A stretch of 47,434 nt of DNA, from contig NIVC01003315.1 in NCBI GenBank assembly GCA_002269645.1, positions 1 through 47,434 on the forward strand, in the 5' to 3' direction. The notes beneath the pieces were generated by a model. It saw nothing but the letters and a program-made list of their open reading frames with translations, did not search any database and was not told the origin of the DNA. Source of the stretch: Macrostomum lignano (lineage: Eukaryota). Shown here in pieces: positions 4,045 to 42,004 of the stretch. Every line of letters begins with the position of its first letter. The stretch's first letter is position 1. Made by a program: the position numbers and the translations under genes.

Positions 4045-5093
4045 TATTGCTGAGATTTCTAGACTGATGGGGTATTTGCTAAGATGTCATGGCTCACGGG
4101 GGGAATAGTTGAGATGTCAAGGCTTACTAAGGGAATTGTTAGGGTCATATGAGAGAAGAAAGAATGCTACATGTAGTTTATTAAAAAACTTGTATTCAAT
4201 TTTTGTTGGCCCCGTTGGGGGCGCTGATTGCTAGTATACATCTAATAATAACTGACTACAATGGTTTTCATTAATGAATGAGTATCATGTCTTCTTCCGC
4301 TATCACTTCTTTGAGACGGACTCTTTGAGACATCCTCCGGGGTGCTTGATTGAGATACGCTAGCGCCGTTCCTGTTCGTTCTGGTGCTTGACTGGGTGCT
4401 GCGGACCGCTCCTCCTACCAACGACGATGGTTTTCTGTTGCGGCGACGCGTGTCGACGCCAACCGGAGAGGCGGCTCAGTGTGCTTGGCTACGCCGACGA
4501 TCTTGCCCTGCTGTCCTCGATCGTCGAGGGCGCCCAGCGCCAGCTGGACCGGCTGGTGAGCGTTGCGGCGAGTGTCGGCCTGGTGGTCGACACGCAGAAG
4601 ACCGTTTTACTCTGCGTGCCGGACGACATTCGAGACTTCTATTTTCTGCCGAGGTGCTGACGGGCAGGTGACGAGGCTTCCGCGCTATCAGCAGTTTGTC
4701 TACCCCGGCAGTCCGGTGCCTCACGTTCGCGAGAACCGGCGACGTCTCCGTAGACTTGCCTGGGCTGCTTTCGTTCCGTGAGGATTGTCCTGCAGCCCGT
4801 GGCCCTGCCTCACAGCCAGAGGACGGCGTTGTTCCAGGCGGTGTTCGTGACCGTCCTGTGGTACAATGCCGAGACCTGGACTCTGACGAGTTTGCTCAAA
4901 CAGCAGGTCGATGCAGCGCACGCTGGCCTGCTGCGCGCCGCTTTCAAAGATCGGCTACGAGCATCAATGCGTCAATGCGGCACTCTATCGCCACACCTCA
5001 AATTTGTTGCGCCGTCGGCGACTCCAGCAGGCCAGTTAGGTCATATTATCCGAGCCGAGTCGTACTGCCCGCAACCGGTGCAGGAGCTGGAGG

Positions 5094-8046: not shown

Positions 8047-9352
8047 ACCCTACCAGCGGGGGCAGGCGCGCACTCGGCGTTTCGTCGACTGCCTGCTGGC
8101 TGATGCCGGCGCCCCGGACACTGCCGGCAGTGCGGCCTAAGTTCGCGCCCAGGCCCTGAAACCCGCACAGCAAAATTACGTATCCAATAGAAAGTGGGAC
8201 GTCTCCCGTACGTAACTTTTTTCGTTGCATGAACGTCCTTGATACGTATCAAATTTTTATGATCCTCTAAAGAAGCTCGTTTCTACAAAAGTTGGACTTT
8301 ATTTTCACTGAAAATATTTTTAAACTTTATGACAGAATTTACAAAAAAAGAATAGATAAAAACTAGCAATTAATCTGTTATATTTAGACATTTCAATTTC
8401 GAAAAAGTTAAAAAAATAGTGAAACATTCATTTTTTCCGTAACCTTAAAAAATATGATTTCGGTGTACAGTGCATGTACTGTAGAACAGAAAACTTGCGT
8501 TTTATCTACTAGCAAGTAGTGTTTAGATTTTAAGCAAAATGGTTGATTAAAAGTTGTAAATTGATATTAGAAAGTTTATAAAGTACATAAAAATTTAAAG
8601 ATTAAATTGTAAGACAGAAAGGTTGAAAACGTTATTTAAAAATTTTTTAAACAAAAAGGTAATATTTCAAAAGATTTATTTTAATTCTCATAAATTTTTA
8701 TAATTTAATATATTATTTTCAATAATTATATTTATTAATTTAATAATTTAAATAATAATTAAAATTATTTTGAAATAATATTAAATTATATAACAATTTT
8801 AATAACATTTAAAATTTTTCATTTTACATTTTACATTTCTATAATTTTAATAATTTTAAAAATTTATTTTTAATTTTAAAGGTTACTTTTCGAACAAAAA
8901 GGTACTGTTTCAAAAGATTCTTTTTAATTCTCAAAAAGTGGCCAGTCAAAAAGAAGAATGGATAAATATTTTCCTAAGCCACAAGAAAAGTATATCAAAA
9001 GGAACTTAATTCAAAGCAAAGATAAAAGGGCGGCTGCAAAAAAAATCAAAATTACCCCGGCGAACACTGCAGTGGCAGGATACTGGCTGCACTCGATTAT
9101 CTTTAGAAATGAACTGGATGCCGGCTAAGCTAAGAACCCTCTTCCAAAAAGGGTTTTACCACTGATACCTACTATGCCTTAGGCCGTAAATTTAGTGCTA
9201 TAAACGAGATATTTATTATATTCTTCTAATGCAACATCCCTCGAAAACTAGGTTTCAAGTGATATCTTGTTCTATGTTGTAGTTGGCTGTTCGATTTCAC
9301 AATAAAGATCTTGAAGCAATTTCCTCCTTGATGTCCAGCGATTCACTCTAAC

Positions 9353-10152
9353 TCATTTGCAGTAAGAGTTGGCGACGGCTGCAATGACGACCTTTCCAGC
9401 AGGACCGCTATTGTGCCCATTCGATCCCTCGGGGTTCCTGCCCGATGCGTCCACGAAGCTGCCGCCTCCGCCTCCTCCATCTCCGCTGCTGCTTCCAGTT
9501 CCGCCGCAACCACCGGAGTAGCCGCCGCCTCCGCCGCCGCCGCCTTCACTGTCACTACCGTCTGTGCCGCCGCCTCCGCCGCCTCCGCCGTAGCCACCAT
9601 CGCCGTTGCTGTTTGCGCCGCCTCCCGCCCAGCTTCCGGTGGCGCTCTTTCCTCCATAGCCTCCATCGTCGCCTGTGGGTCCGGAACCTCCAGCAGAGCC
9701 CCAACCAGCACCACTGCCGCCAGACCTGTCAGTGCCCTTGCTGGGACCTCCCTGTCCGACAGTCGAGCCGGAACAAGTGCTGCTAGTGCCATCGCTGCCG
9801 TCTTTTCCCGTGTCCGAGTTGGAGCCATCACCGCCTCCGCCGCCTCCTCCGGCAGCCAGAAGCAGCTGATCAGAGTTACTGCTTCTGGTTATATAGACAA
9901 AGGTTCCGCCTCCACCACCGCCGCCGCCATTAGAGTCGCCATCGCTTCCGGCATCGGTCCCAGACTTTCCCACGACAATCGTGAGCGTCTCAATCAGATT
10001 GAAATAGGCCATTTTGTAAGCTCCCTTGCCTCCAGTTGCACCTTTTGTTGACTGGCCACCGTTGGCGCCCCATGTTTCGATTTTGTAGCAGGTGTTCACT
10101 TCCGGTGGTGTGAAGAATTGCACTAATCCCGTTTTGCCAGTTGTGCCACTCG
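9353..10152 (-). CDS. Terminal exon: ALK/LTK-like glycine-rich domain (gene A, GRD2)
   Basis: Acceptor catttcag|CG at 10153/10152 (phase 1). Intact frame SGTTGKTG..FTPPEVNTCYKIETWGANGG..LTIVVGKSG..GGGGGGGGTFVY..LLLAAGGGGGGG..GKVVIAAVANSYCK*. Confidence 0.8.
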
Positions 10153-11159
10153 CTGAAATGCGGTTGATAGAGTGTGCGTTCAGTGGTAATGCGATTGTAA
10201 AGACACAGAACTGCATGATGTTTTGAATGCAGCTATCAGTATTATCAGACATATATCACAGCCAAGTTATGGCCAAGAAGTCAGAACTAAGAGACCTGCC
10301 GTCACCCAGATTCAAAGGGTGTAGTGCTTGTGTTGACATGCTGTGGCGTTTACGGGGATAGTCATACTATTGTTAATTCTGGCAAAATATTGTTCTACCG
10401 GATGAAATAGATTAACTTAATAAAATATCTGTGTATGTAAATTTAAATGTGGCTTTTGTTAGAGTTTTATAAGTTTCTTGAGTGCTTGCAACCAAGAGTT
10501 TGTGGCGTCTGTGATTCCTGAAGTTTGATTGCAGATCGAATCCTACCTCGCAAAAGTGGAAGGCTTATACCGTATTGCTTCGCTTTTCAATATCTGAGGC
10601 AATTAATTTTTTTAAGAATAAAAATACGAATTTTTGACTCGCAGTCGCTGCTCTGCTGTTAACGCCGAGGTACTGTACACTCAGTCTACTTGTATGAAGC
10701 ACTTGGATTCACTTTGGTATGAGTATGCCAAGCCAGAAAACTTTGACACACGACAGAGTTCTCAAATTTTGTATACATTCAACCAGTTTATGCCACTTCA
10801 TTAAAGCATGAGTATGTCATTATGCTGTCTGTCGCCAAGAGTAGAATTTTAGGTGTAAAATTTATACCCCTCTGCAAAGTAATAACGGCATGCTATGAAC
10901 TTGTGACGCTTAATGAAATGCGCGTAGTAGGCTGTTTCCACAAAGTATCAACTACGTAAATGGCAAAGTGTCTAACGATTGTAGAGGAATCTAAATAGAT
11001 TCAGTAAGTAAATGACATGAAGTAAGGCTTTGACAAGCTATTGATATATACCTCAGCAAGCGCAGAATAGCATGCAGCCAGGCTTTGACAAGCTATTGAT
11101 GTTTACCTCAGCAATCGCCGTTCTTCACCTAAGTCGTAACCTAGATCTTCGAGGGAACA

Positions 11160-13975
11160 ATCGAGGCGCTGTACGAGTTGAGCGACGAGTTGCAACGAAA
11201 CAACAGCGACGCAGCACAGCACTCTCGGCTGCTCGATGAAATAGAAACCGTCGAGGAGGACTACCGCGTCAGCATGCGAGAGGTCCAGCGTTTCCGGCTC
11301 GCACCCGAGACCTCAGAAGATCCGAGGCAGGCCCAGTCACAACAACAGCAGCAACAGCCACACTTGGAAATAGGTGGCTATGGTGAGTTTGGCGACGAGT
11401 TTGCTCCGAACCATGCCAGTAGACCCGAGGCAGAACAAGCTAGCTTAGCGGAGGAACTGCTGGCAGTCAAGGTGCGAGTTCTACGGAACACGAACTGTCA
11501 AAAGAACTTTGGAAGAATGTTGCGTCGAGTTGAAGTTCCTTACCTTCTACGGAGAAAAACAGCAGTACGAGGTGTGGAAGGCAGCGTTCATGGCTTGGAT
11601 CGATAGGGCCGCGCCACACCAGAGTTCAAACTGCTGCAGTTGCGTCAGTATTTGCGTGGATCGGCGCTGAAGGTGATAGAGAGCACTTGGGTCATTCGGC
11701 TGCTGCCGACCAGGCGGCTAAGGAGAGATTGGAGCGTGAGTACGGCGGCAAGCGACGAAAGTTGGCGCACTACTTGGAGGAGCTAGATAGTTTTCCACCC
11801 GTGAAGCAGAATAGTGCCGAGAAGCTGAAGAAATTCGCAAACATCCTCGATGTGGCTGTAATTAATTTGGAAGAAGCTGGTAAGAACTCCTAACTTAGTG
11901 ATGGACTGCTTTATGCTAGATTGCAAAAAAGTTACCAGAGCCGATGGTCGCAGCATTTCGTCGATGGATCTTCGAGAAGGCAAAAGCAGAAGGCGTTAGG
12001 ACCCTTGAGAGTGGGTTTTGCGTGAGGCAGAGTTCCGGACTGAGGCAGCAGAAATTGTGTACGGGTGGCCGCATCAAGTCAGGAGCAACGGCGGCAAGGA
12101 CAGCAAGCAGAAGGCCTTCCATGTAGCGCAGCTAAGCAAGAGCTCAAGCAAGGGGAGCTAATCCTGTGTCGTCTGCAAGGAGACACACGATCTATGGAAG
12201 TGTCCCGCGTTCGGGAAGCTGTCGGCTGAGAACAGATGGAAGGCTGCTCAGGAAGTCAAAGCCTGTTTCCGCTGTCTTGGCCATGGTCACATCGGTATGA
12301 ACTGCCGACGAGGTGGAAAGTGCGGCGTTGATGGTTGCAGAAAATTCCACCATCGTCTGCTGCATTCGACAACAAGGTCGGAATCGAAAGAGAAGCCAGA
12401 AGGCAAAGCCGGCGCTGAGCAAGAAATGCAGTCGAAGCCGAAAGCTGCAACCGTGACAATGGTAGCTAGAGAAGCCAGTGCGGTTTCACTTCGAACGGTT
12501 CCGGTCATTCTTAAGGCGAATAGGCGAGCTGTGAAGATCAATGCCTTACTTGATGACGCCAGCACAAAGACCTATTTGAATACGGCGATAGCATCCAAGC
12601 TGCTGGAGGCCTGCACGGCAAACAGGAATCAATGCAGGTAAACGTGTTGAACGGACAGGTGGAAACCTTCATAACAGCACCAGTGTCATGCACCTTGGAG
12701 AGTACTGACGGCCAAATAAGCAAGGAGATTACTGCGCTGACGGTAGATAGAGTGACCGGGAGCATGGAAGTAGTAGATTGGCAAAAATTGGCGTCGAAAT
12801 GGTCGCACTTAGGAAACATTCCGTTTCCAAGAAGGCAAACATCAGCGGAGGTTGACTTGCTGATCGGAGCTGATCACACCGACTTGCATGCGTCGCATCT
12901 AGAAGTGTGTGGCAAGCCTGGAGATCCGCAAGCCCGTCTAACACCTTTAGGTTGGACCTGCATTGGCAAGGTTGATGGAGCTTCGGAACGCTCTTTATTT
13001 GCGAGCACATTCTTCAGCGGAGGCGAATTCGAGAACTTGGCCCCATTGTTGCGCCAATGCTGGGAAGTTGAAGAGCTTCAGCGGGTGGAGTCACCTTCAT
13101 TCACGAATTCAGAGCAGCTTGCCCTGGAATGCACTCGATCATCGCTGAAGTTCATTGACGGGCAATACCAGGTTGGGTTTCCATGGGAACCGGATGCCAA
13201 GCTACAAGACAACAACTTCGAGATGGCCATTAAGCGGCTTGGAAACTCTGAGAAGCGGCTCCTCAAGGATCTGGAAATAGCCAAAAAGTACCAGGACGTC
13301 ATCAATCGCTGCGAGAAAGTAGGTCACGTCAGAAGGGTGCTGCAGAATGAGCATCAGGCTATGAAAAGGTACTACCTTCCGCATTTCCCAGTGGTGGCAA
13401 CGCGTGCAGTTCATTTAAAAATGGCGTATGGCCTTGATACAAGCAGCTTCCTAAACTCGTTGTTTCGCATGATCAGTCGCCGAGGTCAAGTTCTGGAAAT
13501 CTTCTCAGACAATGGAACTGATTTTGTTGGTGCAGATAGAGAACTAAAGGAGCTGTGCAAGTCGATGGACAAGAACGCATTGCAGTCATGCACATCTTAC
13601 GTACCGATCAAGTGGCACTTTAATTCGCCTGCGGCTCCGCACTTCGGCGGTGTGCATGAGTCAATGATAAATTTAACAAAGAGGGCGATAAATGCGATCT
13701 TGAGAACGGCAGAAGTCAGCGATGAACAGCTTGTAACAGCATTTGCCGGAGCAGAGCCGCTGCTGAACTCGCGACCTTTGACCTACCAGTCGTCCCATCC
13801 TGGCGACGATCCGGTCCTGACGCCAGCGCACTTCCTGTACGGGCATGTCGGCGGACAGCTGGCACCAGAGACCGCGGCTGACGAGGTGTTCAACCCAACC
13901 AAGAGGTAGCGCTACGTGCAGCAGCTGGTGCAGTCCTTTTGGCGGCGATGGCTCCGAGAGTGGCTGCCAGCTAGT
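11160..13975 (+). mobile_element. BEL/Pao LTR retrotransposon, internally deleted and frameshifted
   Basis: Gag-like segment (11600-11900), three Cys/His knuckles (CVVCKETH, CFRCLGHGHIGMNC, CGVDGCRKFHHRLLH), protease INALLDDASTKTYL, RT start YYLPHFPVV joined directly to integrase ATRAVHL..FSDNGTDFVGA..PHFGGVHE..LLNSRPL, ending FWRRWLREWLP. Confidence 0.9.
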
Positions 13976-14119
13976 GAATAGCATGCAGTCAGGCTCTGAC
14001 CTCAGCAAGCAAACATCTCGATCAAAATACCAAGTGCACTTCCGCTCTTTCATGTCAGACCTGACAAAGTGATTTGCCTTTGAGGGAACAAAAATTTAAA
14101 ATAGCTATATATTACTTAC

Positions 14120-14946
14120 AGGTAAATGTCACCGGAATAGAGGCGTTGATTTCGCAATAGGAACTGGCGACGGCTGCAATGACGACCTTTCCAGCAGGAC
14201 CGCTGTTGTGCCCATTCGATCCCTCGGGTTCCTGCCCGATGCGTCCACGAAGCTGCCGCCTCCGCCTCCTTCATCTCCGCTGCTGCTTCCAGTTCCGCCG
14301 CAACCACCGGAGTAGCCGCCGCCTCCGCCGCCGCCGCCTTCACTGTCACTACCGTCTGTGCCGCCGCCTCCGCCGCCTCCGCCGTAGCCACCATCGCCGT
14401 TGCTGTTTGCGCCGCCTCCCGCCCAGCTTCCGGTGGCGCTCTTTCCTCCATAGCCTCCATCGTCGCCTGTGGGTCCGGAACCTCCAGCAGAGCCCCAACC
14501 AGCGCCACTGCCGCCAGACCTGTCAGTGCCCTTGCTGGGACCTCCCTGTCCGACAGTCGAGCCGGAACAAGTGCTGCTAGTGCCAGCGTTGCCGTCTTTT
14601 CCCGTGTCCGAGTTGGAGCCATCACCGCCTCCGCCGCCTCCTCCGGCAGCCAGAAGCAGCTGATCAGAGTTACTGCTTCTGGTTATATAGACAAAGGTTC
14701 CGCCTCCACCGCCGCCGCCGCCATTAGAGTCGCTATCGCTTCCGGCATCGGTCCCAGACTTTCCCACGACAATCGTGAGCGTCTCAATCAGATTGAAATA
14801 GGCCATTTTGTAAGCTCCTTTGCCTCCAGTTGCACCTTTTGTTGACTGGCCACCGTTGGCGCCCCACGCTTCGATTTTGTAGCAGGTGTTCACTTCCGGT
14901 GGTGTGAAGAATTGCACTAATCCCGTTTTGCCAGTTGTGCCATTCG
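14120..14946 (-). CDS. Internal exon: ALK/LTK-like glycine-rich domain (gene A, GRD1); 1-nt deletion at ~14226
   Basis: Near-identical to 9353-10152. Acceptor catttcag|CG at 14947/14946. AACCCGAG here versus AACCCCGAG in the twin. The corrected frame ends SYCEINASIPVTFT-T|GTAAGT (donor at 14119, phase 1). Confidence 0.7.
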
Positions 14947-15139
14947 CTGAAATGCGGTTGATAGAGTGTGCGTTCAGTGGTAATGCGATTGTAAAGACAC
15001 AGAACTGCATGATGTTTTGAATGCAGCTATCAGTATTATCAGGCATATATCGCAGCCAAGTTATGGCCAAGAAGTCAAAACTAAGAGACCTGCCGTCGCC
15101 CAGATTCAAAGGGTGCTTGTTGTTGACGCTACTTTGTAG

Positions 15140-15350: not shown

Positions 15351-16196
15351 CTCGTCACTTGTGTTGCTGGTAAGAACATCATTTTCTGCAACACTGCGGC
15401 ATTGGTCTCGTTTTCTACTCTAAGTTCACTCATAGACCGTGTCGGACAACTTAGAATGCTGTCGATATAATTTAATAATTATTACCTTGATTCAGCACGA
15501 ATAAGCAAACAAAAAGTGCAAGTCCCTATTAAGCTGCGGAGAGGTGGGTCAGATAAGTATGTGCCCGATCAATCAAGCTGTGGAAGCTTTTGATTCAACC
15601 AGTCGGATACTCAACCTGCTGGTGAGTAAACTGTGGGAGTCTACAGCGACCGAGGCTGCCGTCGAGGCTGCGACAGAGTGCTGCTGTCGATCTAGTCGAA
15701 GTCATTTCTCACTATTCACCTGTGCTGTAGGTCCAAAAAGACTTTGTTGATTGGATGCTAAAGGGGAAAAGGCCGAAATCCTTAGGAGAAGGGAGGGGGA
15801 AAGCAGCGTCAGACAGCGAGAATTGAACGGAGTTTCAGTGGTTGGAGCAACGGGTGTCAACTGTCGACGCGAGCAACGCCTCTGATTGGCTGCTTAAGGT
15901 CCCAAAAGCCACCCGATCACCTGCTTTCTTTCTACCTCTTTGAGGGCAAGAATTTAAATTTTTTGGCTCCAATCGCTGTCACGAAATGATTTACAACCGT
16001 AAAATTATGTAAAAATTGCATTTCTAAAAAGAGTTTGAAGTGACAGTGAATTACATGTGGAACAATACTTCTATTAAATACAGTAAGAATTCCATAATCC
16101 CAGAGAAAAATTGGCAAAAATATGATTACGGCCTACTGCCAGTAGCGTATACTGTACCATTTAAATATAAATTTTTTAAACCCTGCTTCTGCCTAC

Positions 16197-17672
16197 CATT
16201 AAAGATGACCGACGACATAGCCGTCGTTTTTGTAGTCGTAGTGGTCATATTTTGAGTCGTGGTGGGGGTAGTCCAATTTGAAGCTGTAGTAGTCGAAGCC
16301 CCTGTGGTCGTAGTCGGAGCCTCTGTGGTCGTAGTCGGATCCCCTGTGGTCGTAGTCGGAGCCCCTGTGGTCGTAGTCGGAGCCTCTGTGGTCGTAGTCG
16401 GAGCTTCTGTGGTCGTAGTCGAGCCCCTGTGGTCGTAGTCGGAGCCCCTGTGGTCGTAGTCGGAGCCCCTGTGGTCGTAGTCGGAGCCCCTGTGGTCGTA
16501 GTCGGAGCCTGTGGTCGTAGTCGGAGCCCCTGTGGTCGTAGTCGGAGCCCCTGTGGTCGTAGTCGGAGCCCTGTGGTCGTAGTCGGAGCCCCTGTGGTCG
16601 TAGTCGGAGCCCCTGTGGTCGTAGTCGGAGCCCCTGTGGTCGTAGTCGGAGCCCCTGTGGTCGTAGTCGGAGCCCCTGTGGTCGTAGTCGGAGCCCCTGT
16701 GGTCGTAGTCGGAGCCCCTGTGGTCGTAGTCGGAGCCCCTGTGGTCGTAGTCGGAGCCCCTGTGGTCGTAGTCGGAGCCCTGTGGTCGTAGTCGGAGCCC
16801 CTGTGGTCGTAGTCGGAGCCCCTGTGGTCGTAGTCGGAGCCCCTGTGGTCGTAGTCGGAGCCCCTGTGGTCGTAGTCGGAGCCCCTGTGGTCGTAGTCGG
16901 AGCCCCTGTGGTCGTAGTCGGAGCCCTGTGGTCGTAGTCGGAGCCCCTGTGGTCGTAGTCGGAGCCTCTGTGGTCGTAGTCGGAGCCCTGTGGTCGTAGT
17001 CGGAGCCCCTGTGGTCGTAGTCGGAGCCCTGTGGTCGTAGTCGAGCCCTGTGTCGTAGTCGGAGCCCCTGTGTCGTAGTCGGAGCCCTGTGGTCGTAGTC
17101 GGAGCCCCTGTGGTCGTAGTCGGAGCCCCTGTGGTCGTAGTCGGAGCCCCTGTGGTCGTAGTCGGAGCCTCTGTGGTCGTAGTCGAAGCCCCTGTGGTCG
17201 TAGTCGGAGCCCCTGTGGTCGTAGTCGGAGCCTCTGTGGTCGTAGTCGGAGCCCCTGTGGTCGTAGTCGGAGCCTCGGTGGTCGTATCTGAAGTCGCAAT
17301 CGGAGTCATGGTGTTCGGAGCCGTAGTAGTCATCGAAGTAGACTCACAATCTGCTCTGGTTCGCAGCACCTGCGTGTTGCAGACCGGCCCGCTACTGAGC
17401 TGCCAGTAAAGCAGCAGGTCGCAGCTGTCTCCCAGAATGCATGACCGGTTGCTAGGCAAGTACTCATAGACTGAGCACAGGGCCGTGTTGCTCGCGCATT
17501 CGACAGCGCACACTCGAGCATCGGCAACACCGAGCACTGTGCGCTGACCGCTCGCAGCAGTCACAGCATTGTAGCACAGGTCCGGCCTCTTGTCGAAGAC
17601 AAAGGTAATCGTGGCTGTAAGTGAAATTAGAACTGCCAATATAATGGCAGTTCTGAAAAGACATGTAGACAT
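16197..17672 (-). CDS. Gene A exon 1: signal peptide + PAN/apple-like domain + (GAPTTTT)48 mucin stalk
   Basis: Hydrophobic leader MSTCLFRTAIILAVLISLTA; PAN-type Cys spacing CAVECASNTALCSVYEYLPSNRSCIL; Thr repeats; ends SSVIFN-G|GTAGGC (donor at 16196). Frameshifts are confined to G/C runs of the array. Confidence 0.75.
16289..17290 (-). repeat. Coding 21-bp tandem array, 48 units (GGGGCTCCGACTACGACCACA = GAPTTTT)
   Basis: Unit starts were counted at a 21-bp period. Ten units are short, by 13 nt in total. Confidence 0.95.
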
Positions 17673-21228: not shown

Positions 21229-24200
21229 TTAATTAGTCAGCCTGTCAATGAGCTGCCGCAGCACGATGTTGCGCGTCCTGCCGCTCGAAGCTCGCACCTT
21301 GACGCCCTCTGCAATCTGCGCATGACTCAGAGCCACGCAGACCTGGCCATGTTGATAGCAGGCCATCGCCAGGTCAACGGCGTAGGTGCTCAGCGTCTGG
21401 CCTTGGCTATGGTGGATGGTCATGGCGAAACACAATCGGATCGGGAACTGCAGGCGGCGGAAGGTGAAGGGCAGCTCGGTTGGACCCGACTCCTGTTGGA
21501 TCCGCGGGATAAAAACCTGCCGCCCGTGGTAGCTGACGCCCGTGGCGACCTCCGAAAGCAGTACGTTGTCCCGCAGTTCGCGAAGCAGCAGCCGGGTCTC
21601 GTGGCACATCAGCGGAGGGTCCAGATTCCTCGTCATCATGACCGGCATGCCGACCTTCAGCTCTAACCGGTGATGTGGCAGGCCGTTGGAGTCCAACCGG
21701 TTCAGCAGCTCCGGTAGGGAAGTTGCTCGCTGCCCCATCGTCGTGCGGAAATTGAGTCGACCGACAGGTAGACCCGACTCTCACCGGGAAGCAGCGCCAA
21801 GCAGGTGACGTTGGCTTCGTCCAGGGTCTTGTTGAGCGGTCTTATCTTGCTCCGCGTACATCTGGTTGGTTCAAACGATGGTTAGACGTGCCGGATGAGC
21901 TACTAGTTGTGTCCTCAGGCTTGAAAATAAATTCAACATTCAGCGTTCAAGCTCAAGTTTTTCGATAGATCTTGGTTAATTCTAAAATAAGGTTGTAGTG
22001 TGCGTACGCACGGTATCTTAGCCCAAAGTGTACGCCCGGGCGGTCTGATTGGCTGCAGAGCGGGGTGGGTGCCGCCACCCCAATTCTAGCTCTAAATATA
22101 TAGATGTGTGCCCAGCGCGGCGAGAGTGTAAGAGTTTCGACTACACCGCAAACACGGCCTCTGTCTCAGTTACTACAAGGGTTAAAGGAAATTCACCTGA
22201 TCTGGCTCAACACGTGGCTCAGGCAGTCCGTAGGCAAGCAGCTCAGTTCCTCCCATGGTGTCCAGCAGTGTCTACAGCTCTCGCTAAACCTCCAACTCGG
22301 CAGCCTCTGGGCTATAGCCTTAGTCTAGCAGATCAACTCGCCGGAGAACTTCTGCCACAGCTTTGCAGGGTCGCTGGGGCCGCCTGCATGGCGACACAAA
22401 ATGGCAGCGAAAAGGCGGCGCAGAGCCGCTGGCAACCGCGTCTCCGTGGCTTCGCACAGGCAAAGTCACCATGGTGCCTGTCGTCTTCCAGCAGTCCACG
22501 AGTCTGGCAGGCGGCAGCAGTCCTCTGAAGGTCGGCAGCAGGACGCCATCAACGGTGCGCAACGCCTCGAATGACGTCGGGCCTCGAACATTCACCAGCA
22601 GCAGGCGCAGGCAGAAACTGTCTCCCGTCCGAGGGCTAACTGTGTAGACGCGGCCGTTGTTGCCAGTCGTCAGCACGCCAGCTGGCTGATCGGCAGTCTC
22701 TCGGCTGTGCCTCGCGCGATGCCACTGGTGCGCCCTGTTGTCTCAGGTGAAGTTCCGGGGTACCTCCTGGTACAGCAGGTCTCGCGCAACTGCATCCTGG
22801 TCGTCCTTCAGGCTGATGAAGGGCCAGTCTGATGACAGCCGGATACCGACTGTTCATGTGCACTTAAAAGCCCAAGATGGTGCTGACCACCTCCATGGGA
22901 CTAAAGTACCCGCCCAGAAGGTGCTGCCTGACTTGCGCTTCGCTGGCGCCGCCTTGGTCTGAGCTGACTGATGGGGCTGCTGATCGCCACTTTCCTGAAG
23001 AGCCGCCGCGTCGCTAGCCGTAGTAGCATGGCTGTCGGCCTTCGCATCAGCAGCAGCAGCTAGCTCCTTCCGGACTTGGAATTCGCTGCCCTTAAATATA
23101 AGGGTACCGACGTAGTTTAACGCCTTGACTGTCGCACAGATCTAGACGTTCAGGTGAGACCTAAACTCGTGCAGCAGCACAGGGCAGTAAGCACGACCTA
23201 GCGCGGTTTGCCTTCTGACCGCCGCGCAGCTTTGCGACCTTGGCCACCGAGAAGCCGCTTATCTAAGTTAATATGCGATGATAGTGCGGGTAGCCGTCCT
23301 CTTGAATCATGGTGACTGCCTAGAACTCTCTCGGATAGCGCTTGCTACATGCGCCATTCTCCATGCACGACGCGTCTGGATTCAGCTGCATTACACAGGG
23401 ACCATGTGTTGTATTTTCTGCTTCCGTCCGTGCGGACCGCAGACGGGCTGATCAGGGGTTCGGGTACTGGACTGCCCAGAGCTTGCCAGGTGGGATAGGC
23501 GAGAGAGTGGCGACCCCCGAGGCGTACGAACACTTCGAGGTGGAGGTGGAGAGGCTGGGAGCGTACAGACACTCGGCCAGCCCCACGGAGAGAGGGAGAC
23601 GCAGATGAGGAGGCTGTGAGCAGGTAGCCACTCAGCAGCAACAGCAGAGGTGAGCACGGGTCTGGAGGCGTACAGACACTTCGCAGACCCGAAGGAAGAC
23701 GGTGGCGAGAGAGGTAAATAATGAAGGCGGGACAAATTAACGAAAGCGAACGCTGTCTTACCGGGCGGGGTCACTTGTCGCGCTGATGCAGGCGTGGCCT
23801 CTAATATCTCAGCCTCAGTTGACTGTATTTCAATTTCAAGCTTCACTTTCACTCAAACACGTGTAGAGCTAGAGTTGTAGAGAGAGAGCAGGGAGGGCGA
23901 GAGCCGGGCGAGGGCCGCGCGCGCACATAAATACTGGGTGAGCACTGAGCAGGGGACTGGGGAGGGCTTAGCCACGCAGGGCTGGGGGTGGGGGCAAAAC
24001 TCACAGAGTTGAAGGGCGAGAGGGAAGGCTAGCCAATCAGGTGCCTCCGCGGCGAGACACATGATTGGACTAGCCCACGCGAGAGAGAGAGATGAAAATA
24101 CGCCAGCCAATGAAAATGTGGGCTGATGAAAGTGAGAACAAAAAATGAATAGCAGCTTTAGACGGAGGGGGCAAGCCAGAAAAAACCAGTGGCAGGGAGA

Positions 24201-26944: not shown

Positions 26945-27738
26945 TTAGTTGCAGTTGGCACGAGCGACGGCTGCAATGACGACCTTTCCAGGAGGACCGC
27001 TGTTGTGCCCGTTCGATCCCTCGGAGTTCCTACCCGATGCGTCCACGAAGCTGCCGCCTCCGCCTCCTCCAACGCCGCTGCTGCCTGATCCGCCGCAACC
27101 ACCGGAGTAGCCGCCGCCTCCGCCGCCGGCGCCTCCGCCGCTACCGTCTGTGCCGCCGCCTCCGCCGCCTCCGCCGTAGCCACCATCGCCTTTGCCGTCT
27201 GCGTCGCCTCCCGTCCAGCTTCCGGTGGCGCTCTGTCCTCCATAGCCTCCATTGTTGCCTGTGGGTCCGGAATCTCCAGCAGAGCCCCAGCCAGCTCCAC
27301 TGCCGCCAGACCTGTCAGTGCCCTTGCTGGTACCTCCCTGTCCGACAGTCGAGCCGGAACAAGTGCTGCTAGTGCCATCGCTGCCGTCTTTTCCCGAGTA
27401 CGAGCTGGAGCCATCACCGCCTCCACCGCCTCCTCCGGCAGCCATAAGCAGCTGATGCGAGTTACTGCTTCTGGTTATATAGACAAAGGTTCCGCCTCCA
27501 CCGCCGCCGCCGCCGTTATTGCTGTGATCACTTCCTGAGTTGGTCCCAGACTTTCCAACGACAATCTTGAGCGTCTCGGTCAGATTGAAATAGGCCATTT
27601 TGTAAGCTCCTTTGCCTCCAGTTGCACCTTTTGTTGACTGGCCACCGTTGGCGCCCCACGCTTCGATTTTGTAGCAGGTGTTCACTTCCGGTGGTTTGAA
27701 GGATTGCACTGATCCCGTCTTTCCAGTTGTGCCACTCG
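26945..27738 (-). CDS. Gene B exon 2: ALK/LTK-like glycine-rich domain
   Basis: Acceptor cacttcag|CG at 27739/27738 (phase 1). Intact frame SGTTGKTGSVQSFKPPEVNTCYKIEAWGANGG...GKVVIAAVARANCN*. Confidence 0.85.
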
Positions 27739-29067
27739 CTGAAGTGCGTTTGATAAGGGATGAGCGCTCAATTGAAATCCATTACGTGTACATTCTAGAA
27801 GTCGCTAAATGTACTCTAACACTTCGCGGAAAATGTATTTACAATCTGAGCATTAAAAGTATATTTAGCCTGCGAATGGCTGCTGGATGTGCTGCTTGTT
27901 CATTACTGACAAGACAATGTCTTGTCGATTTGAGTGACAGAGATCGATTTCGCTTGTTGGTCATTTGCAGCCCTTATGGTTTGGTTTTCTCACTAAGTTT
28001 CCTCACAGAACCTGTCGAAGCACTCAAATTTCTCAAAGCGCAACTAATCATATTCTCAACCTGCAGGTGACCTTGGATTCCACAGTCATATCGAGGCTTC
28101 TAGACAGGGTGACAGCTACTGCTGACAAATTACCAATGACTTTTCTTTTTTTGAGCAGTAATGATGGGGAGCCAGGAGAAAAGAACGATGTTTCAGGGGT
28201 TGCTGCACCGGGTGTCAATGCGATCAAAGTCTCTGAACTTGCCGGAGTATCCTGTTTCAGCAAATAAATGAACAGAAAACAATGTAAAATTTTGCACTCA
28301 AGGTAAATAATCAAGCGGAAGGAACAGAATATGAAGATGGGAAGATTTGGGCTGATCCCAGAGAATTCCTGTGGTACAAAACAGATCTATTGAAGCTTTT
28401 AAGCGTCTAAGAAACTCATAAACATGTACCGGGTATGCAGGCTCTGATCGATCCTATACAACTCATGATGACCCATCAATAAGCACGTGTGGACTTGAAA
28501 CTTATATACATATGTTTGCAATAATATGTAAGAATCGTCTCCTAGAAAGAGTGCAAAGGTGACAGAGAAAAACATAATTAACAAGTCTTATATATTACTT
28601 TAAGAAATAGCTCCCAAATCAGAGAGAAAAATGACAAAAATTAACTGCCAGTAGTCAATACTGCACTTAGGCCAATATGCGAATGTAGAATTTGAAAAAA
28701 ATTTGCATCATCATGATCGGTTCTTTCTTTAACTCCCTGGTCCCTGATTCATACATGCGCCGGCATTTCGACAGATGAAATTCCTCTAGGGAGAGACTAT
28801 ACGCTCGTACTATTCCATAGGTAGAAGAGGATATGATGTACAATATTATTATACATGTACAGCCAGTAAGGCATAAATGATGTACTTCGTTTCATTTATG
28901 CTTTTATCAGCTTTGACTCCACTAAGAGAGAAAAAGTAGTGGCGTAAATAAATGTGTGCATATAAATTTTCTACACGCCGATTGCTTGAAAAATATATAC
29001 CAAGATTTCTCAACGCCTATTATATAGCATTAATTATACAAACAGAAACATTAAAAATTCCGCCTAC

Positions 29068-29494
29068 CATTAAAGACGACCATCGGCGTTGCAGTAGTTG
29101 AGGTCGTAGTCGAAGTCGTAATCGGAGTCGTAGTGGTCGGAGCCGTAGTAGTCATCGAAGTAGTCTCACAATCTGCTCTGGTTCGCAGCACCTGCGTGTT
29201 GCAGGCCGGCCCGGTGCTGAGCTGCCAGTAAAGCAGCAGGTCGCAGCTGTCTCCCAGAATGCATGACCAGTTGCTAGGCAAGTACTCATAGACTGAGCAC
29301 AGGGTCGTGTTGCTCGCGCATTCGACAGCGCACACTCGAGCATCAGTAACCCTGAGCACCTTGCGCTGACCGCTCGCATCAGTCGCAGCATTGTAGCACA
29401 GGTCCGGCCTCTTGTCGAAGACAAAAGTCAGTGGAGATGTAAGTGAACCCAGAACTGCCAGTATAATGGCAATTCTGAGAATACTTGTAGACAT
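29068..29494 (-). CDS. Gene B exon 1: signal peptide + PAN/apple-like domain + short Thr stalk
   Basis: MSTSILRIAIILAVLGSLTS leader, the same Cys pattern as gene A, TTT-rich linker, and end MVVFN-G|GTAGGC (phase 1, donor at 29067). Confidence 0.85.
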
Positions 29495-34456: not shown

Positions 34457-37400
34457 ATGCCATTGCCAATTGGACGATTCTCTTTGACCAACGTTGCCCG
34501 ACTTTATCAACTACCGAGGCTACTGCAAGTGCAGCACAATCTCAGAGCGGCAATGTCCTCCTCACCTGGATACCTAATTAATGAGCCTAAGTATGCTTGG
34601 CTGAAAGATCTTGGACTAGAGGTTAGTAATCAATATTTAAGTACACTGTGTACTGAATTGTTGGTATTATTAAGCTTGAAATTTATGTTTTTATGGTAAC
34701 TTAGAGGGCCAACCCTTAAGGCACAGAGGGTGTGCATGCCTGATGATTTGGAAATTCAGTATTGTCGCAATTAGTGACGCAAAGTCATTAACAATGGTCT
34801 CAGCAAGTGTAGAACCCTCTGCAAACAATAACTTGTGCACTCCATATTCGCAGGAAGTCAACAAAGGAGTGTACAGCGGTGGCGCCTGGAGCGGCAGCGG
34901 CAATCGGATTGACTCCATCTGTCCGGCTAATGGTAGAAAAATTGCCTCAGTAGTTGAAGGCACCCCGGAAGATTATAACAAACTGATTGAGGCGGCCCGT
35001 GCCGCTTGGCCAGCCTGGGCGGAGACCACGCCACCGGCTAGGGGAGAGATTGTTCGCCAGATTGGCGACAATCTGCGCAAAAATCTGCAACTACTTGGCA
35101 AGCTGGTGTCGCTTGAAATGGGAAAAATTCTGCCCGAAGGGGTGGGCGAAGTGCAGGAAGTTGTTGACATTTGCGATTACGGTGTTGGATTGTCCAGGAC
35201 GTTGAGCGGCCAGGTGAGGACCTTCTGAGAACCTAGTAGAGATCTGAGGACCCAGTAGGGATCTGATGACCTAGTAGGGATCTGATGACCTAGTAGAGAT
35301 CTGAGGACTTAGTAGGGATCTGATGACCTAGTAGGGATCTGAGGACTTAGTAGGGATCTGAGGACTTAGTAGGGATCTGAGGACCTTGTGGGGTCCCGAG
35401 GACCTAGTAGGGATTTGAGGACCTAGTAGGGATCTGAGGACCTAGTAGGGATCTGAGGACCTAGTAGGGATCTGAGGACTTAGTAGGGATCTGATGACCT
35501 AGTAGGGATCTGATGACCTAGTAGGGATCTGAGGACCTAGTAGGGATCTGAGGACCTAGTAGGGATCTGATGACCTAGTAGGGATCTGATGACCTAGTAG
35601 GGTCCTAAGGACCTAGTGGGGTCCTGACCTGAGGATCTGGTGGGGTTCTGAGGACCTAGTAGGGTCCTGAGGACCTAGTGGGGTCCTGACCTGACAATCT
35701 GGTGGGCTTCTGAGGACCTAGTAGGGATCTGGACCTAGTGGGGTCCTGAGGGCCTAGTAGGGATCAGGGACCTAGTGGGGTCCTGAGGACCTAGTGGGGT
35801 CTTGAGGACCTAGTAGGGATCTGAGGACCTAGTAGGGTCCTGACGACCTAGTGGGGTCCTGACCTGACAATCTGGTGGGGTTCTGAGGACCTAGTGAGGT
35901 TCTGAGGACCTAGTAGGGATCAGGGACCTAGTGGGGTCCTGAGGACCTAGTGGGGTCCTGACCTGACAATCTGGTGGGGTTCTGAGGACCTAGTAGGGTC
36001 CTGAGGACCTAGTAAGGATCTGAGGACCTAGTGGGGTGGGGTCCTGACCTGAGGATCTGGTGGGGTTCTGAGGACCTAGTAGGGATCTGAGGACCTAGTG
36101 GGGTCCTGAGGACCTAGTGGGGTCCTGACCTGAGAACCTAGTGGAGTCCTGAGGACCTGGCAGGGTTCTAAAAACCAACTGACCACCTGGGGATGTTTCG
36201 GGTTCAGTAGAGTGCTAAATGAATGATCAGATAGGAACTGTAATTAATTATTATTCTACAGTAATGTCTTAGATAGAGTAGGAGTAATATGAATCAGTTA
36301 AAACTTTAATGCATCATATCGTTCTTGCAGGCAGATTAATACTAGATGGTCAGTTGGTTTCGTTGAATTTTAAAACATACCACAAAGCAAAAGAACATTT
36401 CAAGGTGGTTACCTAGCAAATCTGTGTGGGTCAGATGGGTGTATCTTCAGACTGCTGTACAGTGGGTGTGGTCTTTCACCCGAGTTTGTGTATAGCAGCA
36501 AGCGTGGAAAGAAACTCGCTTTTCTTTCCGGTAGAAAATTTCTCTTACCCCACAGTTCTAGCGGTTGTGTCCAGGGCGGTTGAATACCGAGCGTACACTG
36601 CAGGCCCTGGGGTTTTCAGTGACGAATACCCGAAAGAAGGTTGATAAGCCATCTGAAAACGAATTAAAGTACTCGTTGGTAGTCTAAACAGTTTACGCAA
36701 CAAACTACTCTTATCATTTATCAGTAGTATGCTGTGATTAAATTTTGAGTTTTTGTGCAGAACTAATTAGGTGACGAGGCGTTAAAGCATTTACTCCCGT
36801 CCCGCCTTTAACGACTAGTAATCAGTGTACTAATTAGATGACGAGGCGGTGCCAAAGTCATGTTTACTCCCGCCTTTTACCCACTAAAAGAGCACAATAA
36901 ATGCATTAAATTTTACCAGGTGCTACCATCCGAGCGGCCCAATCACTCTCTAATGGAAGTGTGGAATCCACTGGGCGTCATCGGAGTCATCACCGCTTTC
37001 AACTTTCCCTGCGCCGTGTTTGGCTGGAACTTCAGCCTGTCAGCCGTGTGCGGCAATTGCACAGTGTGGAAGGGCGCCCCCAGCACGCCGCTGACTACCC
37101 TGGCTGTCACCAGAGTTGTAGCCGAAGTGTTCGAACGGAATGGCGTCCCGCCCGGCGTCCTGTCGGCCATCTGCGCCGGGGCCGACGTTGGAGCCGCGAT
37201 GGCGGCTGACGAGCGACTGCCACTGGTGTCCTTCACCGGCAGCTGCGCCGTGGGGCGCGAGGTCAGGCTGCGCGGGGTTAAGGATGCCAAACTGGGGGGG
37301 GGGTCAGGGTGCCAAACTCGGAAGGTCAAGAGTACCAAACTTACAGAGGGGGGGTCTCAAATGCCAAACTCGATGGAGTCAACGGTGTCAAACGTAAGGG

Positions 37401-38251
37401 GAGGTCAAGGGTGCCAAACTCGGGGGAGTGGTCAGGCAAACTTTAGAGGGGTGCAATGCAAAACTTCAAGGGGGTCAGGGTGCCAAACTTCAGGGGAGGT
37501 CAAGGGTGCCAAACTTTAGGGGAGGTCAAGGGTGCCAAACTTCAGGGGAGGTCAAGGGTGCCAAACTTTAGGGGAGGTCAAGGGTGCCAAACTTCAGAGG
37601 TCAAGGGTGCCAAACTTCAGGGGAGGTCAAGGGTGCCAAACTTCAGAGGTCAAGGGTGCCAAACTTCAGAGGTCAAGGGTGCCAAACTTCAGAGGTCAAG
37701 GGTGCCAAACTTCAGGGGAGGTCAAGGGTGCCAAACTTCAGAGGTCAAGGGTGCCAAACTTCAGAGGTCAAGGGTGCCAAACTTCAGGGGAGGTCAAGGG
37801 TGCCAAACTTTAGGGGAGGTCAAGGGTGCCAAACTTCAGGGGAGGTCAAGGGTGCCAAACTGTACCTAAACTGGTTCAGCTGTGCCAATTTTTTCTCATT
37901 AAATATGGCCAGATTGCTAATAATGCGCCCCTCAGGTTGCGGTGACTGTGGCTGGCAGATTCGGCCGCATTCTGCTCGAGCTGGGCGGCAACAATGCCAT
38001 CCTGGTGAACGCCGATGCGGATCTGGACATGGTTGTGCAGTCAGCCGTCTTCGCCTGCGCCGGCACCGCCGGTCAGCGCTGCACCTCAACCAGGCGGCTG
38101 GTGCTACACAGCTCCGTGCACGATCAGGTCGTGTCCCGGCTGGGCAAGGCGCTGGAGTCGCTCATGGCCAAGGCTGGCGATCCTGTTGAACAGGGCGTGC
38201 TGTACGGCCCGCTACACTCGCCTGCCTCCGTGGAAAAGTGAGTTCTGTCTG

Positions 38252-41830: not shown

Positions 41831-42004
41831 CCCAAGTATTCATCAAATGCGCAACTTAACCGAAATATCTGGGGTCCGTTTTCAATCTGTCTTCCCCTTA
41901 CCTACTGCAGACTAATTTTACTGAAAATAGGCAGTTCTTGAAGACCCAGTTTTTCTGTAGTTAAAATGCAACACTTCTTTAATTTCTCTTTCAAGACTTT
42001 GGAA

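Follow-up and report, generated by a model that had tools for sequence, protein, structure and literature searches.

A tandem copy of a terminal TG-domain exon in Macrostomum lignano, and its possible use as an internal exon

Can the last exon of a gene become an internal exon of that same gene? A locus of the flatworm Macrostomum lignano raises this question. In the window that we analyzed (a stretch of 47,434 nucleotides (nt), positions 1 to 47,434 of contig NIVC01003315.1), a reverse-strand gene, which we will call gene 1, has two nearly identical versions of its terminal exon. This exon encodes a domain related to the TG (TNF-like plus glycine-rich) domain, which binds the ligand in the receptor kinases ALK and LTK. 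Copy A (9353-10152, reverse strand) ends in a stop codon, and copy B, which lies upstream of it, runs into a consensus splice donor. Our alignments indicate that copy B arose by tandem duplication of the terminal exon of this gene, which encodes a secreted PAN/Apple-mucin-TG protein. A sequence-only reading of this locus had proposed that copy B is a symmetric exon of phase 1-1 and not a dead duplicate. Below, we describe the duplication, and then we weigh whether exon B is likely to be spliced.

A duplicated terminal exon

Using blastn, we found that 9355-10321 (copy A) and 14149-15115 (copy B) are 97.8% identical over 968 nt. Local alignment lengthens the match by ~12-16 nt, with two small indels. 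The duplicated segment is ~980 nt long and lies 4.8 kb upstream of the original. As delimited by these two methods, copy B (14149-15127, reverse strand) contains ~180 nt from the end of the intron, at 97-98% identity, as well as the TG exon up to its last sense codons. Because the end of the intron was copied along with the exon, this was a duplication at the DNA level, and the duplicated intron sequence upstream of the acceptor rules out a retrocopy. Copies A and B have the same acceptor, tttcag|CG, at 10152 and 14946, respectively. Besides a gap of one nucleotide in a homopolymer, copy B has no disabling change.

Which copy is the original? The window contains a close paralog, gene 2, which is a clean two-exon, single-domain gene. 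Its exon 1 (29494→29068, reverse strand) ends with ...PMVVFN+G|GTAGGC, in phase 1, and its single terminal TG exon, paralog C (27738→26945, reverse strand), served as the outgroup in a three-way alignment. Copies A and C have the same stop position and homologous 3' untranslated regions (UTRs), as 9189-9355 aligns with 26773 onwards. The open reading frame (ORF) of copy A stops 6 codons past the last β-strand, with TGA at 9355-9353, and is followed by a 3'UTR with AATAAA at 9212-9217 (reverse strand). Copy B leaves A and C at the stop codon, or a few bases ahead of it: A reads TGC AAA TGA, while B reads TGC GAA ATC. Since A and C share the stop and the 3'UTR and B diverges at the stop, A is ancestral and B is a derived, truncated terminal exon. 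Copy B sits in the original intron, and the DNA before copy A (10338 upward) is unrelated. Judging from these alignments, the ancestral gene consisted of exon 1, an intron, the domain exon, and the UTR; the present locus has copy B, a filler, and copy A in place of the single domain exon.

Exon 1 of gene 1 (17672→16197, reverse strand) was identified from its ORF and translation and has a homolog in the first exon of gene 2. It codes for a signal peptide, a PAN/Apple-like domain (a weak PAN_1 match in a Pfam scan), and a long mucin array with a 21-nt unit (APTTTTG). At 16197, it ends with ...AMSSVIFN + G (GTC ATC TTT AAT G|GTAGGC), which is phase 1. The donor of intron 1, GTAGGC, is at 16191-16196 (reverse strand), and the same donor is found in gene 2 at 29067. 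The first introns of the two genes also align as clear homologs (z 16.5). A more distant relative from the Mlig_3_7 annotation, P0002 (BOX15_Mlig019850g2), has an exon 1 of 388 nt that ends with ...AVYEN+G|GTGAGA, followed by one terminal domain exon. A phase-1 intron between strand 1 and the rest of the TG domain is common to all three genes. Also, gene 2 and P0002 end as copy A does, with no transmembrane segment or kinase after the TG domain. These comparisons suggest that family members share one plan: a signal peptide, PAN, and a linker, followed across a phase-1 intron by a single terminal domain exon.

The best database match, P0001 (UniProt A0A1I8J935, from M. lignano), is 100% identical over 135 amino acids to paralog C (27739-27335). 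This entry is a partial model of gene 2 (27335-29130). It translates the linker in a wrong frame (SDYD) and splices at a GT that precedes the real donor by 12 nt. The entry is called a "receptor protein-tyrosine kinase" on account of a match to PF12810 alone; a kinase is not encoded. A third, more distant family member lies at ~1840→1084 (reverse strand). It is 44% identical to copy A and has an in-frame TGA at 1483-1481. A tandem array of 6.8 copies of a 49-nt unit (2231-2564) lies upstream of its TG exon (1084-1840). We found no publication on these genes in a literature search.

The domain is a homolog of the ALK/LTK TG domain by both profile and fold. In single-sequence Pfam scans, the matches are below the gathering cutoffs (PF12810, ALK_LTK_GRD, 21.4 versus 24.5 bits; PF21722, Gly_rich_2, 23.4 and 18.4 versus 24.3 bits). 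A profile of 19 family members matches ALK chains with E = 1.4e-25 and LTK with E = 1.2e-23, over ~255 profile positions. We also used AlphaFold to model the tail of exon 1 joined to copy A (pLDDT 77.7, pTM 0.84). Foldseek searches with this fold against the PDB found 21 ALK/LTK chains, with E values of 1e-12 to 5e-6 and TM scores of 0.57-0.65 for the human chains. The TG fold, a β-sandwich with helices of glycine runs, corresponds across the whole domain (TM 0.6-0.65; PDB 7NX1, 7MZY, 7LS0, 7LIR), with the same glycine runs. In contrast to the ALK/LTK receptors, the flatworm proteins have no transmembrane segment or kinase, so that the domain forms the C-terminus of a secreted PAN-mucin protein, and the domain itself lacks ALK's insertion of ~25 residues after the first strand. 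Other homologs with TG or glycine-rich domains include many short (~300 amino acids) proteins from metagenomes (P0004-P0028 and P0179), some of which have PEP-CTERM or prepilin-type signals, and Foldseek also gave weak matches to phage tail fibre proteins. These matches indicate that the TG fold is widespread outside of receptor kinases.

In the family alignment, the domain has a conserved start, x-F-[T/N]-x-x-G..G..G, and the glycine runs are invariant. In the AlphaFold model, SVIFNAS (S9-S15) is the first β-strand. Because this strand (VIFN) comes from the upstream exon, on the other side of the family-wide phase-1 intron, the domain exon by itself does not include strand 1. The family motif, the modeled strand, and the match to the ALK/LTK TG fold all bear out an early proposal about this locus, namely that the F-T/N strand that precedes G..G..G is supplied by the upstream exon. 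The putative junction from B to A would read VTFT-S-SGTTG, which matches the family motif. The sequence-only reading had noted that VTFT|S-SGTTG mirrors the VIFN|A-SGTTG of exon 1. We agree about the boundary and about phase 1, but the junction of exon 1 to B would read VIFN|A-NGTTG.

The reading frame of exon B

Candidate internal exon B (14120-14946, reverse strand) is 827 nt as assembled, and only with a length of 828 nt would it be in phase 1-1. The difference is in a run of C. The three-way alignment shows C3 at 14226-14228 in copy B (GGAA-CCC-GAGG), against C4 in copy A and CTCC in paralog C; copy B thus has one base fewer than both. It had already been remarked from the sequence that one C is missing here and that, with this C restored, copy B lacks its twin's stop and continues to a donor. 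We confirmed this: with the extra C, the reading ...EGSNGHNSGPAGKVVIAAVASSYC-EINASIPVTFT is open and reaches ACC T|GTAAGT, with the donor at 14119-14114. The read-through tail, (E)INASIPVTFT+T (14120-14148, reverse strand), is not homologous to A or C and has no other copy in the window. The claim of an 828-nt phase 1-1 exon holds with the extra C but not for the exon as assembled, which has a TGA (...PLFR*) at 14131-14129 (reverse strand), 10 nt before the donor.

Is the missing C an assembly error? In the mucin array of gene 1 (16289-17286), whose 21-nt unit is ACGACCACAGGGGCTCCGACT on the gene strand, there are 13 single-base deletions and 0 insertions, all of them in G4 or CC runs. These deletions switch the reading among APTTTTG, LRLRPQG, and SDYDHRG. 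As assembled, exon 1 is 1476 nt, which does not fit the phase-1 donor; 1476+13 does fit. The deletions look like uncorrected errors in a long-read consensus. The published M. lignano assembly, Mlig_3_7, was built by Canu from PacBio continuous long reads and was polished only with Pilon (PMC5730564), which bears on the C-run if that assembly is the source of the window. An assembly error in copy B is credible because the nearby exon 1 has 13 deletions and no insertions and regains its own frame once these are filled in. We put this explanation of the missing C at a little short of an even chance. More generally, this stretch of the M. lignano assembly has uncorrected homopolymer deletions, and frameshifts here are no proof of pseudogenes unless they have read support.

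A number of observations weigh against the splicing of exon B into a functional message, and the first of these concern the frame. The assembled exon is not divisible by 3 and is not open to the donor, so it is symmetric only if the C-run is C4. Its frame shifts after ...GRNP, so that the nearly invariant last strand, G-x-V-x-I, is lost. In the AlphaFold model of the assembled B product, pLDDT falls from 77.7 to 69.3, with residues 258-270 below 50. The indels of a related gene also count against an assembly error. P0002 is encoded at two Mlig_3_7 loci (NIVC01002065.1 and NIVC01000067.1), which differ by 2.0% substitutions and by 14 gaps over 6.25 kb. Eleven of the gaps are of 1 nt, and none of those is a contraction of a G/C run. 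From these gaps, ~1 real 1-nt indel is expected in a neutral 800-nt copy at ~2% divergence, and the 0/11 contractions imply that residual errors in G/C runs look rare in polished unique sequence. (The tandem array adjoining the P0002 gene varies in length between the two contigs.) Furthermore, the C-run of copy B is only 80 nt from its unique flank, so paired reads should have permitted its correction.

The remaining points are from evolution, from the donor, and from protein databases. When changes are polarised with paralog C as the outgroup, 5 nonsynonymous changes and 1 synonymous change fall on the B lineage, in addition to the frameshift, although these are small numbers. All of the relatives that we found are single-domain proteins. 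The exon side of the donor, CCT, is non-consensus. Finally, we searched a set of 5.8 billion proteins with a 116-residue junction query, and we found none with the tail of B, the junction, or the C-terminus of copy A, while the control, P0001, was retrieved. Given that the junction query recovers only P0001, this result means only that this database has no model or ORF of the TG exons of gene 1.

The A lineage, polarised in the same way, has 4 nonsynonymous nucleotides (in 2 codons) and 4 synonymous ones. Copies A and B differ at 16 exon sites, with dS of 0.041, dN of 0.014, and ω of 0.34 by the NG86 method (based on few changes). By the same method, ω is 0.52 for A-C and 0.70 for B-C, and the A-B value is not above the family baseline of 0.5-0.7. 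The replacements that are specific to B are located in variable columns of the family alignment.

Many of these observations are what would be expected if copy B were a dead duplicate. In that case the 1-nt deletion would be genuine, exon B would be skipped or would be a poison exon, and the tail, the donor, and VTFT would be chance features of the filler. The assembled sequence is out of frame, ~1.4 real 1-nt indels per 800 nt are expected for the A-B pair at its divergence, the B lineage has 5 nonsynonymous changes versus 1 synonymous change, and the single-domain architecture is universal among the relatives. Also, a hidden polyploid with redundant copies tolerates a broken copy (PMC10468722), and another family member of the window has an in-frame TGA. 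However, a dead duplicate requires three coincidences: a breakpoint near the stop, an open run to a phase-1 donor (expected in ~0.3% of cases, or in 7% for any usable donor), and V-x-F-T where the next domain needs a strand. Copy B has no other disabling mutation, and its deletion is of the same type as the apparent assembly errors that riddle the nearby exon 1. We regard a dead duplicate as a serious possibility, about as likely as in-frame use of exon B with two domains, but one that falls short of being probable.

The divergence between A and B (2.0-2.2%) is the same as that of the two P0002 loci (2.0%). The genome of M. lignano is a hidden polyploid with redundant gene copies, and its assembly has many duplicated loci (PMC10468722). 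Copies A and B may derive from different subgenomes or haplotypes. Because their divergence equals that of duplicated loci in this polyploid genome, the duplication is not datable.

The same figures would fit an assembly artefact, in which A and B are subgenome or haplotype versions of one exon that were joined via a repeated BEL element. Besides the matching divergence, this explanation can draw on the many duplicated loci of a hidden polyploid (PMC10468722) and on the uncorrected errors in this region of the assembly. But both junctions of the filler adjoin unique sequence, the filler occurs just once in the window, which is free of gaps, and the 5.8-kb structure is within the span of single PacBio reads. 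Two different BEL-linked rearrangements would be needed, at both ends of the same exon. We consider such an artefact to be very improbable.

Splice signals and the origin of the filler

What would the splicing machinery find at exon B? The consensus donor, GTAAGT, is at 14114-14119 (reverse strand; exon side CCT). The GTAAGT at 14119 is the sole GT[AG]AG between 14946 and 13900, and there are just 14 instances of GTAAGT in 94,868 strand positions. If sequence is read through at random, a phase-1 GTAAGT is expected to be reached before the first in-frame stop ~0.3% of the time; for any GT[AG][AG]G in that position, the expectation is ~7%. That the breakpoint is adjacent to the stop and that the tail has a strand-like motif add to the coincidence. 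By our own count, the GTAAGT donor of B can pair with U1 at 7/9 positions, versus 5/9 for the GTAGGC donors of the family. The acceptor of B is 1.25 kb from the donor of exon 1, versus 6 kb for the acceptor of A, and this nearer acceptor should be met first by splicing. The mean intron of M. lignano is 1.1 kb (PMC10468722), while the predicted intron from B to A is 3,967 nt.

Given these signals, we lean slightly toward the view that exon B is spliced as an internal exon at all. That its splicing yields an in-frame protein with two domains is appreciably less probable, as this also depends on the C-run. The donor, the open tail, and the motif suggest that exon B was compatible with splicing at its birth, which does not imply that it has been maintained. 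The contention that copy B is a symmetric exon and not a dead duplicate is thus supported in part. In its favor are the same acceptor as copy A, the sole strong donor in the right phase, and the absence of a close poly(A) signal; but the assembled frame is broken, the tail is unrelated filler, and the relatives are single-domain. The further suggestion that alternative use of the acceptors at 14946 and 10152 "tunes" the number of domains is speculation.

Alternatively, exon B could be a terminal exon in its own right, if the C-run is C4 and the donor is not used. The product would be a one-domain protein with a C-terminal tail of 13 residues (EINASIPVTFTCK), its 3' end would lie in antisense BEL sequence, and copy A would be silent. 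The read-through does end two codons beyond the donor, and past B, the gene strand has ATTAAA (nearest at 13624) and AATAAA (nearest at 12999). This alternative would also account for the breakpoint at the stop without needing a donor. On the other hand, a perfect GTAAGT with the acceptor of copy A 4 kb downstream is unlikely to be left unused. The poly(A) signals are 0.5-1.1 kb away, and copy A retains an intact ORF, the ancestral 3'UTR, and AATAAA. We think that an alternative terminal exon is quite unlikely, and we return to exon B as an internal exon.

If exon B is used, then the 3.8 kb of filler between the copies (10338-14148) would be the body of an intron. It had been suggested that a BEL insert between the exons is spliced out. 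There is indeed BEL/Pao homology between the copies, but instead of a clean insertion we see a truncated antisense fragment, which exactly occupies the space. The dead BEL/Pao fragment (11010-14092, forward strand, antisense to the gene), which makes up most of the filler, has gag-like and protease regions with frameshifts. DUF1759, which is gag-like, is at 11678-11962, and there is a weak match to the start of DUF5641. Residues 456-1144 of the closest full BEL/Pao polyprotein, P0029, correspond to 11520-13456, over shifted frames, and residues 1848-2058 correspond to 13337-13969, a region that covers just the C-terminal half of the integrase core. Residues ~1145-1847, which include the reverse transcriptase (RT), RNase H, and the N-terminal part of the integrase, have no counterpart in the filler. 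The C-terminal domain of the integrase is almost absent from the fragment. Nor did we find a pair of long terminal repeats (LTRs), inverted repeats, or a target-site duplication in the filler. Overall, the fragment does not have the full set of an intact BEL/Pao element, which is gag, protease, RT, RNase H, integrase, two LTRs, and a target-site duplication.

The sequence after the truncated pol, 13968-14092, is a diverged repeat of 11054-11161, which is upstream of gag (z ~6.8). A 55-nt motif is found in two tandem copies upstream of the gag region (11011-11118) and again after the truncated pol (13976-14000). This leader-like motif may be the remnant of a leader or an LTR. Without LTRs or a target-site duplication, we ruled out recombination between two full BEL elements. 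The BEL fragment is better described as filler at a duplication junction than as a transposon that jumped between exons.

The last 56 nt of the filler (14093-14148), which hold the read-through tail and the donor, have no match elsewhere in the window. At the other end, the left 700 nt of the filler show no homology to intron 1 (z 0.3).

Could the tail and donor of exon B be older than the duplication that we see? There might have been an early tandem duplication that took in the end of exon 1 together with the intron and the TG exon, with gene conversion of the two TG exons later, in which case VTFT|GTAAGT would be a diverged form of VIFN|GTAGGC. This would change only the origin of exon B and not how it is read. 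Such a history would account, without any coincidence, for the phase, for the motif, and for how sharply the homology ends. Also, if 64 nt around 14119 are aligned with the donor as the anchor, they match the boundary of gene 1 at 31/64 positions and that of gene 2 at 27/64, and 0/345 control GT sites reach these values. But in a permutation that preserves composition, p is only ~0.03, and it is 0.5 for the intron part versus gene 2. Genes 1 and 2 have introns that match each other (z 16.5), but the left end of the filler has no such similarity to intron 1 (z 0.3), and gene 2, the closest paralog, has no second exon. We consider this older origin to be improbable. As for the homology of the B tail to the tails of exon 1, which was strong against the 345 control sites and shrank to p ~0.03 by permutation, we do not claim it.

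In our main reading, a segment of ~980 nt was duplicated with its downstream breakpoint at the stop, so that copy B lost the stop, the 3'UTR, and the poly(A) signal. Copy B kept its native phase-1 acceptor, and the first 35 nt of the filler give it ten open codons and a donor that no other nearby site equals in strength. Splicing would then probably join exon 1, B, and A in series, with the BEL fragment removed inside the intron of 3,967 nt. Joining exon 1 straight to A, with B skipped, would be the ancestral alternative and may still occur. If the C-run is C4, B would be a symmetric 828-nt exon of phase 1-1, the protein would have two TG domains, and the VTFT of the filler would replace the strand that normally comes from exon 1 (VIFN). 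If the C-run is C3, translation would end at 14131-14129, and the domain of B would be without its last conserved strand. In its complete form, the proposal is that a terminal exon has been caught in the act of becoming an internal symmetric exon: the duplication removed the stop, the filler gave the donor and strand 1, and the gene now makes a secreted protein with two domains that resemble the ligand-binding domain of ALK and LTK, or with one domain by skipping. We offer this complete proposal tentatively, as possible but, taken as a whole, less likely than not.

Known duplications, neighboring features, and significance

Exon duplication is an already known kind of event, and copy B is a further case. 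According to Patthy's rules and to the surveys by Kondrashov & Koonin and by Letunic et al., tandem exon duplication and shuffling reportedly proceed via symmetric exons of phase 1-1. As in those cases, a domain-sized exon was copied in tandem within one gene, and its use would add a repeated domain to a secreted protein. Unlike those cases, the source was a terminal exon, and the loss of the stop and the gain of the donor come from the breakpoint and the filler. Another difference is that strand 1 sits on the upstream exon, so the copied exon does not contain a whole domain. Also, the frame of exon B is broken as assembled, and its splicing is only predicted.

The filler has parallels as well. 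The Bar duplication of Drosophila has a roo/B104 element at its breakpoint, and templated insertions at duplication junctions are known. Here too there are two direct copies of host DNA, with retroelement sequence exactly filling the junction. But this element is truncated and internally deleted, without an LTR pair or a target-site duplication, and ~700 nt at one end of the filler and 56 nt at its other end are of unplaced origin. In exonisation, transposon-derived or intronic sequence supplies a new splice site. Similarly, the donor and the last ten codons of exon B would come from DNA that is foreign to the gene. In contrast to exonisation from a transposon, the 56 nt with the tail and donor lie past the last detectable BEL homology (14092).

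There is other transposon debris in the window. Between the family genes, we found an ORF with a Pif1 2B domain (21229-21738, reverse strand), which is probably a Helitron-like or helicase fragment, and there is an RT-like ORF with a YADD motif at 4388-4660 (forward strand). Farther along the window, aldehyde dehydrogenase exons (34743-38200, forward strand; Pfam positions 5-111 and 110-222) have satellite arrays of 19 nt and 26 nt between and after them. A protein kinase exon adjoins a 35/140-nt satellite of 1.3 kb (41966-43791, forward strand).

If the splicing of exon B were confirmed, the locus would offer a clean and datable case in which a last exon has turned into a reusable internal module. 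The placement of the breakpoint, together with foreign DNA, would have solved the problems of the stop, the donor, and the domain boundary at once. This step is assumed by models of exon shuffling, and it has rarely been shown. In any case, these genes form a tandem family of secreted, non-kinase flatworm proteins with the TG domain of ALK and LTK, which bears on the origin of this fold.

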